Positions 54,239-55,758 of a stretch of 64,000 nucleotides of DNA are shown piece by piece. The position numbers and the translations under genes are program-made. The notes beneath the pieces are model-generated. The model worked only from the letters and a program-made list of their open reading frames with translations, was not told the DNA's origin and did no database searches. Within the stretch, counting starts at the first letter, position 1. Each line of letters starts with the position of its first letter. Source of the DNA: Syncephalis fuscata S228 (taxonomy: Eukaryota > Fungi > Zoopagomycota); NCBI GenBank assembly GCA_025786725.1, contig JAHLTZ010000004.1:1-64000 (forward strand). Direction: 5' to 3'.

Positions 54239-55354
54239 ATGGATCACTTGCGTGCAATCCAACAAAGCTACAACAGCTTTCTGTCGCAATTCCCACTAAA
54301 GAAATATCCTGTTCATTATAAGGCTGAAGAGTTCTCTGTGCCCAAGCTATTTATCTACGGTCCATCACATTGGAATCAAAAGGCTTCTTTTGACGTAAAA
54401 TGTCTTCAGTGGCAGGTTAGTTGAATACGAGCAACAACACACCAGTATAACATGCAAAATAGACCTATTTAAATATGCGTAACGTCGAATACGATGTTTA
54501 TTACAGCAATGAAGGCAATGCGTCGAGTAATGGTAATTTACTGCAATCTATATCACAATAAAAACTGAAGGAGGTGCTATATTTACAATTAGATAAATTA
54601 CCGTTTCTTGCCCTGCCAGATGGTCGTTACTTGACTGGAGAGGAGATTCGAGAATATGCTGACAAAATCGAACAGTATAGCAAAGACGAGGTAAGGCAGT
54701 ATTTGGCTTAGTAGGCATAATGAATAACTCATCTTTAGAACAAACCAGCCGATAAAGCCGATGACGACACAACTGAACAAAATCCAGATGAGCAGGCATT
54801 GTTGTCATTAATTGAACGTAAATTATATCCTGCGCTGGTAAGAAGCAAATCAGAGTGTAGAAATTGCAATTAACGTTTTACAGTTATATTGGTTGTGGTG
54901 TGAGCAAGAAAATTACCGTAGCTTGACTCGACTCCATTACGGCAGTCAGTATCATAAACCTTTAGACAAGCTGTTCCATGGACAATGCAACGTAATGTAT
55001 CTAACTGGATCTACACACGATACCGCGGCGATTTAAGCTATGATCGTATTTATGCCGATGCAGCCGAAACTTTACTTGCTCTTGATAATCAACTGGGTAA
55101 AGAGACTTGGATGCTCCACCAAAGGTAATTAGTACAAGTGAACAATATGACGGCATATGCTGATAATAAGCAGTAAACCAAGCTTCCTTGATGCCGCGTG
55201 CTTTGCTTATTTGCACGCTATCCTATCTACAACCACTGTGCCGCAAGCTAAATTACGCTCTTTAGTAAGACAGCATGAAAATCTTGTGGCCTATGAACAA
55301 CGCATATTTGCTGAGCAATTTCCAAATGACTCAGAGTTAGCTAAAGACCATTAG
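54239..55354 (+). CDS. SAM35: Sam35/metaxin-like mitochondrial SAM complex subunit
   Basis: FPLKKYP, SFDVKCLQWQTYL, SNEGNASS..KLPFL.LPDG, IYADAAETLLALDNQLG and PSFLDAACFAYLHAIL...HENLVAYEQRI. Several introns. 1-nt frameshift at ~54974. Confidence 0.82.
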
Positions 55355-55758
55355 TATAACAAGTGGGTCAGCCTACGACCCCTCACTTGTCCCAAATGAT
55401 CATTGTTGCTACGAAGTAGAACGTTAAATAAACAATATAACATACTATTGATTTCATTGAAACGTTTGAGGCCAATCATTATTGTTGTTGGCCATGCATA
55501 GAAAGATTGACCAAATATTAATAGAAGCCATATGATTGCGATTCCATGTCATTCCGTATTAATTGTTGTTACATCTATGTACATCATTGATTATTGCGTC
55601 TAAATGGTCTCTTCTATTTTCTAATATTTTACTATTGCATTTTGGACATCCTTGTGATGTAAGATCAAGATTAATATAATTGGTATAAATGTCGTTTATT
55701 AAACAGCCATCTTCTTATAGTCAATCTGACTAAATAAATGGCATTTGAACGATTAATA
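55351..55758 (-). mobile_element. Decayed Fanzor/TnpB C-terminal fragment plus putative right end with hairpin (candidate omegaRNA / Helitron-like terminus), copy 2
   Basis: One minus-strand frame reads INLDLTSQGCPKCNSKILENRRDHLDAIINDVHRCNNN*YGMTWNRNHMASINIWSIFLCMANNNNDWPQTFQ* (CPKC at 55648-55637, WNRN at 55546-55535). Hairpin at 55359-55390, then TATACTAA|T. Confidence 0.82.
55359..55390 (-). ncRNA. Candidate 3' stem-loop of a Fanzor omegaRNA scaffold (or Helitron subterminal hairpin)
   Basis: Minus strand ACAAGTG-AGG-GGTC-GTAGGCT-GACC-CACTTGT: an 11-bp stem with a 3-nt bulge, GC-rich within AT-rich DNA, about 65-95 nt downstream of the Fanzor-like F-Q-R/stop. The RNA function is inferred. 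Confidence 0.45.

Follow-up and report, generated by a model that had tools for sequence, protein, structure and literature searches.

A decayed Fanzor1 tail on a short inverted-repeat element of the mycoparasitic fungus Syncephalis fuscata

Elements similar to the one described here are already known from other fungi, and a comparable arrangement has been published. In Spizellomyces punctatus, the 19 full-length Spu-1 genes are outnumbered by ghost Spu-1 loci, which are ~550-nt non-autonomous copies bounded by inverted repeats that have no ORF, are flanked by TA duplications, keep the region at the right end, and are well conserved and expressed (Saito et al. 2023, PMC10432273). In Mucorales, the full-length elements ROr-4, PBl-3 as well as MCi-4 (4.5-5.2 kb, MuDR-type, 6-9 copies) are flanked by 9-bp target-site duplications (TSDs), and in the same table of Fanzor elements an 8-bp TSD is listed only for the viral IS4-type element ESvi-1B (Bao and Jurka 2013, PMC3627910). 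Merlin transposons, which are known from Mucoromycota and once from Zoopagomycota, have a terminal 5'-GG, imperfect terminal inverted repeats (TIRs) of 24-462 bp and an 8-bp TSD (PMC8101967).

Two copies of a Fanzor1-derived family, here called family A, lie in the window, by which we mean the whole stretch of 64,000 nucleotides analysed (Syncephalis fuscata S228, contig JAHLTZ010000004.1, positions 1 to 64,000). Family A resembles ghost Spu-1 and partial Spu-1 loci in consisting of small copies bounded by inverted repeats, with the right end kept and no transposase found inside, and in the conservation of a motif that directly precedes the left end (CA in Spu-1, TT in family A); unlike the ghosts, it keeps a coding tail, has an 8-bp TSD and 12% divergence, and no intact gene was found. 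It shares with ROr-4 and PBl-3, and likewise with MCi-4, a Fanzor1 sequence within short TIRs, the lack of a transposase and a home in early-diverging fungi, but differs from them in being short, in carrying the tail only, in its 8-bp TSD and in its hundreds of copies. New here are a TT|A preference on one side of the target, located where a TAM would lie, and the finding that the named closest kin are all Mucoromycotina. As delimited by alignment of sister copies, the features in the window are as follows.

55424 to 55968, minus strand: copy 1, subfamily A2 of family A, truncated at its right (3') end
55949 to 55968, minus strand: degenerate left TIR, matching the family's GGAGCTAYTKTACTTTGASTC at 15/21 positions
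55863 to 55948, minus strand: AT-rich 5' non-coding part, common to sister copies
55666 to 55852, minus strand: 187-bp AT-rich A2 segment with a near-identical 10-mer on both sides and weak inverted ends
55448 to 55665, minus strand: Fanzor1 C-terminal coding remnant with LTSQ, CxxC, RC, a stop, WNRN (Asp to Asn), MASINI and PxxF
55424 to 55447, minus strand: 3' non-coding stub, from which ~115 bases (hairpin and right TIR) are gone
31150 to 31609, minus strand: copy 2, without left end, 3' region retained, frameshifted coding tail at 31299-31514
31150 to 31200, minus strand: right end of copy 2, with a degenerate right TIR at 31150-31170 and an inner inverted copy before it

An earlier note on this DNA had placed a Fanzor remnant at 55351-55758. 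The coding tail at 55448-55665 stands, whereas the outer parts of that interval do not: 55351-55423 is host DNA because no sister copy aligns past 55424 (the sister alignments run from 55942-55967 to 55424), 55666-55758 is non-coding filler that is nearly open by chance, and the element itself reaches 55968. Both the minus-strand frame and the second copy that had been claimed are present. In copy 1 the frame runs from the Leu of LTSQ (55663-55661) through a TAA (55561-55559) to a TGA (55456-55454), and the second copy matches it at 84% over 31274-31609 and has two 1-bp deletions. Homology begins at 55665, where a cut within the Tyr codon of the DEY motif bounds the remnant on its 5' side; the fourth Cys is gone, and RuvC-I, the catalytic Glu and the right end are absent as well. 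The remnant in copy 1 does not qualify as a working nuclease.

The assignment to Fanzor1 comes from profile comparisons. PF07282 matches window positions 55514-55693 with an E value of 4.3e-4 and 25.3 bits, just under the cut-off of 26.3 bits, which sister copies exceed; the window piece alone gave no NCBIfam match. A Fanzor1 profile made from 23 database relatives scored 65.3 bits on 55448-55693, while 500 codon shuffles reached at most 6.4 and the reversed sequence -1.6, and in a genome-wide search with this profile the window tail was found at E 1.3e-16. When an uninterrupted natural sister frame (L049:1462-1854), not a typed consensus, was used as query, 132 related proteins were recovered, some of them 560-1040 aa long; the long relatives contain VDPG, IxFG, DEYLTSQ, a four-Cys finger, WNRD and RPxxF, and have all three RuvC motifs. 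Against solved structures, the relatives' profile ranked SpuFz1 first (1e-25), followed by PpFz1 (1e-18), GtFz1 (3e-15) and the Fanzor2 protein L79 (1e-8), with TnpB weaker, so that the relatives are nearer Fanzor1 than either Fanzor2 or TnpB. The decision came from the profile alone; short single-sequence searches of solved structures gave nothing significant (best E 0.05), and a word-based homologue search with a 102-aa piece gave no match and is uninformative on longer kin.

In the SpuFz1 fusion, the counterparts of DEY and WNRD are chain residues 935 and 1000, 65 apart, and the catalytic residues E541 and D606 of SpuFz1 have this same 65-residue spacing (PMC10432273). In Fanzors the site is characteristically rearranged, with a Glu placed directly before the zinc finger (PMC10530073); in family A its codons (DEY) are kept in 10 of 53 distinct copies and align to the SpuFz1 Glu, and they are absent from the window copy. 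Downstream, the TnpB-type zinc finger is followed by the RuvC-III motif WNRD, with the Asp kept in some sisters and replaced by Asn in the window. Judged from its sequence, the structure ranking, the 65-residue spacing and the rearranged Glu thus identify the stretch as a Fanzor1 tail by descent. It shares with SpuFz1 (Spizellomyces punctatus), PpFz1 (Parasitella parasitica) and GtFz1 (Guillardia) the DEYxTS motif, the CxxC..C..C finger, WNRD and RPxxF in the same order; unlike these proteins, family A has the tail only, without WED, REC and RuvC-I, and the window copy is also without the Glu and has stops. The ancestral WNRD that the earlier note had reconstructed is seen directly in two sister copies, L048 and L054 (codons CGC GAT). 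Since sister copies keep DEY and WNRD, the parent had intact RuvC-II and RuvC-III residues. A nuclease-dead parent was considered and rejected, because the Glu and Asp codons are kept in sisters and their loss tracks CpG decay; moreover, replacement of the Asp by Asn would not by itself inactivate a Fanzor1 (PMC11423790).

The S. fuscata assembly searched comprises 29.4 Mb in 371 contigs, in which a first look gave 615 candidates by DNA and 461 by protein search. Among the best protein candidates, at least 150 copies were scored, every one with E<1e-13. The true copy number is probably 450-600, and we estimate that the family makes up roughly 1% of the genome (~500 copies of 0.65 kb). Elements are 0.55-0.8 kb overall, with complete copies of ~630-800 bp, and have imperfect, GG-ended TIRs of 21-23 bp; the left end is GGAGCTAYTKTACTTTGASTC and the right end, inverted, is GGTTGAAYTKTACTTTGACTC, with a common core and different outer bases. 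Exact matches to the left-TIR pattern number 81 across the genome, versus 0 for the control. The target duplication is 8 bp: flank identity of facing ends is 0.454 versus 0.334+-0.025 for shuffled flanks, and 9/41 pairs of 8-bp flanks are at least 75% identical versus 0-2 at other lengths from 5 to 12. Among short elements one of these matches is perfect and two are 7/8, with a third in a longer element. Family A has what defines MITE-like elements, namely TIRs, a TSD, short length, no transposase and many copies.

Two subfamilies bear on the history of the window copy. In A0, ~130 codons are kept, DEY included, whereas A2, to which the window copy belongs, has the 187-bp AT-rich piece where A0 carries the RuvC-II region. 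This segment is possibly a nested mini-element; among the loci examined, it was never found alone as an independent MITE and never outside family A. A second Fanzor1 lineage, B, occurs back-to-back with A between TIRs of the family-A type; lineage C, the third, has no visible TIR and in one locus (L054) has received an inserted A0 copy; A, B and C are separate clades in the tree. In composites of ~1.1-1.35 kb, tails of A and B are enclosed together by TIRs, standing in tandem in L077 and back-to-back in L056 and L080, and in L013 an A copy is surrounded by 88-bp inverted ends.

Altogether, our results support a model, to which we assign a probability of about 0.85, whereby the window copy and its sisters are dead, MITE-like deletion derivatives of a Fanzor1-carrying cut-and-paste DNA transposon that were mobilised in trans and are now decaying. 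In agreement with this model, the earlier note's proposal of a non-autonomous or fossil Fanzor derivative is borne out by a Fanzor1 tail on a TIR element, by disrupted copies and by neutral decay. In our model, an internal deletion would have removed WED, REC and RuvC-I, joining the left end to the gene tail and the right end with DEY kept (A0), and a second rearrangement, in which the 187-bp AT-rich piece took the place of the RuvC-II part, would have given rise to A2. A DDE transposase acting in trans with an 8-nt target stagger would then have spread A0 and A2 as passengers, and the copies would later have eroded, largely by CpG deamination. The tail would have survived because it adjoins the right end needed by the transposase, not because it is translated. 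We infer this deletion history, as a full-length family-A parent was not found. What such copies would document is the end state of a Fanzor element, in which the gene is apparently lost, the tail and right end are amplified, and no usable enzyme is left.

The genome was searched for the parent in several ways. The intact full-length Fanzor ORF that the earlier note had proposed to look for was not found among the best candidates scored in the genome searches, nor were the RuvC-I Asp, WED and REC in one frame of at least 600 aa; at top-scoring tail matches there were no open frames above ~190 aa, and with the N-terminal half of the relatives no family-A match began before profile position ~206. 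The sole RuvC-I match in the genome is at a separate locus, C317:733328-734270 (minus strand), the longest Fanzor1 relic seen, where the RuvC-I half matches at E 1e-13 in an open frame of 235 aa and the RuvC-I and RuvC-II matches are distributed over at least three frames (235, 131 and 76 aa); this split could be spliced or frameshifted. Another longer Fanzor1 relic at C311:19376-19840 (minus strand) covers profile positions 152-312 and has six stops.

These searches, together with the 3' region, bear on a rival model that treats the copies as functioning ghosts of the Spizellomyces type, with right-end omegaRNAs loaded by an intact Fanzor encoded elsewhere in the genome. In S. punctatus, the omegaRNAs of ghosts do function (PMC10432273), the C317 locus has both RuvC-I and RuvC-II matches, and the 3' region is retained in most copies of family A, where the inner inverted TIR copy can pair with the right TIR in a 13+4 bp stem with 82.6% of cells paired versus 29-49% when slid. 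By comparison of sequences, the 3' region would fit an eroded omegaRNA, and the right end of copy 2 (31150-31200) is a candidate for its 3' stem. Against this, covariation in the stem does not exceed that of shuffles, single-copy fold z-scores range from -1.9 to +0.4 with none significant, the stem is missing from the RNAalifold consensus, the longer locus is broken over at least three frames, and copy 1 in the window has lost its 3' region. We therefore regard working ghost loci as very unlikely. An Rfam search returned nothing credible. An omegaRNA at 55335-55460 was also considered and rejected, as this interval is mostly host DNA.

A second rival, that the tail is a domesticated or otherwise selected short zinc-finger peptide, is highly improbable given how the copies decay. 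In some copies, open frames of 120-150 aa do span the motif, but they pass through AT-rich non-coding DNA, and Cys ligands are lost. Across 53 distinct copies, identity to the consensus averages 88%, change is equal across codon positions 1, 2 and 3 (0.109, 0.135 and 0.108), and in 48 the tail is interrupted by a stop or frameshift. Decay of the family is neutral. In twelve CpG columns the copies are divided between TG and CA; the Arg-Asp codons of WNRD are among these columns. This strong family-wide decay of CpG to TpG/CpA suggests CpG methylation of Syncephalis repeats.

The element ends bear on the transposon that may have carried the nuclease gene. Like Merlin, family A has 5'-GG termini, imperfect TIRs and an 8-bp TSD, within the 8-9 bp of that superfamily; unlike Merlin, its TIRs are only 21-23 bp long, and no DDE_Tnp_IS1595 match was found in the genome, where searches for an IS1595/Merlin transposase (PF12762, NF033547) gave no candidate. 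An IS1595-like partner may have been lost from the genome. MULE relics are present, with no tie to the family-A TIR established, and the TSD is 8 bp versus 9-11 bp for Mutator/MULE. hAT termini are of the CA/TA type, so that GG ends do not fit this superfamily whereas the 8-bp TSD does; the hAT profile PF05699 had no match in the genome, but its control matched nowhere either. Weighing these features, we place a carrier with Merlin-like ends at slightly under even odds; a Mutator carrier is possible but distinctly less likely, a hAT carrier is doubtful, and any other superfamily would be unexpected. A Fanzor-Merlin pairing was not found in a literature search, and no similar TIR was found around the Fanzor genes of Rhizomucor, Thamnidium and three metagenome contigs. 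Helitrons carry Fanzor1 in Chlamydomonas (PMC3627910), and a Helitron carrier could be imagined whose hairpin/CTRR end would fall near 55349-55392; this is hardly tenable, because that interval lies outside the repeat and complete copies have TIRs and 8-bp duplications, which Helitrons, defined by a 3' hairpin and CTRR, do not have. Membership of the motif in some unrelated family of zinc ribbons, the outcome named in advance by the earlier note as fatal to its claim, is a reading to which we give virtually no credence: the window piece is just below the Pfam cut-off and without NCBIfam match, but the similarity does not stop at the Cys pairs, taking in WNRD, NI and RPxxF and, upstream in A0 copies, DEY as well; the relatives have all three RuvC motifs, the TnpB/Cas12f zinc ribbon ranks first among Pfam families, and the top solved structures are the three Fanzor1 proteins.

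Two other repeats were seen alongside family A. Elements of ~865 bp in L057 and L071 (G000:C2:611534, C61:17148) carry the left TIR of family A together with a sequence resembling its right end, lack any remnant of Fanzor coding sequence, and are candidates for a true ghost. A different repeat at L012:2634-3403 has 287-bp inverted arms with 96% identity and is MULE-like by its long TIR.

Insertion sites of family A are biased. At left-type ends, TTA occupies positions -10 to -8 in 22/43 distinct flanks versus a mean of 2.4 at other positions, and the 8-bp duplication starts with the A of TTA, which recurs after the right end. On the right side the preference for TT is far less marked (Fisher p 0.001 at -9 and 0.05 at -10), and the bias holds also at left-type ends capping lineage B. 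A guide leaving the right end would start with the duplication, which puts TT or TTA in the position of a TAM; by analogy, these bases may be TAM-like. An asymmetric transposase preference explains the TT|A bias equally well. In Spu-1, CA lies upstream of the left end in a comparable position (PMC10432273).

Placing the tail among its relatives extends the range of Fanzor1 to a zoopagalean mycoparasite; in the literature search, Fanzor and Zoopagomycota came up together only in work on giant viruses. In a tree of 123 columns, with names for a minority of its rows, the family A clade (SH-aLRT 96) has eight named members, all Mucoromycotina, and the named close relatives are from Thamnidium, Rhizomucor, Rhizopus, Backusella, Benjaminiella, Umbelopsis and Mucor. 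Syncephalis is a haustorial parasite of Mucorales, and a transfer from hosts to parasite is plausible as a candidate explanation, although identity of family A to its close relatives is only 44-52% and Zoopagomycota are poorly sampled. It is tempting to combine these observations into a scenario in which a Fanzor1 on a Merlin-type transposon was acquired from Mucorales hosts, its hundreds of copies act as ghost-like omegaRNA donors, and TT|A is the TAM of the lost nuclease; as a whole, we consider this scenario unlikely.

Finally, we note the genes around the window copies. A 525-codon ORF at 55998-57575 (plus strand), which matches neither Pfam nor NCBIfam and looks F-box-like by eye at its beginning, starts at a distance of 30-70 bp from the left end, so that the element occupies its upstream region. 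On the other side, the last exon of a convergent gene at 55151-55354 (plus strand), with a weak GST-like match (E 0.009), stops 70 bp short of the element's truncated end. The window also encodes a fungalysin M36 at 33252-35215 (plus strand), which belongs to a large S. fuscata paralogue family with closest paralogues at 87-92%, and a trypsin-family protease at 50721-51632 (plus strand); the two are typical secreted enzymes of a Syncephalis parasite.
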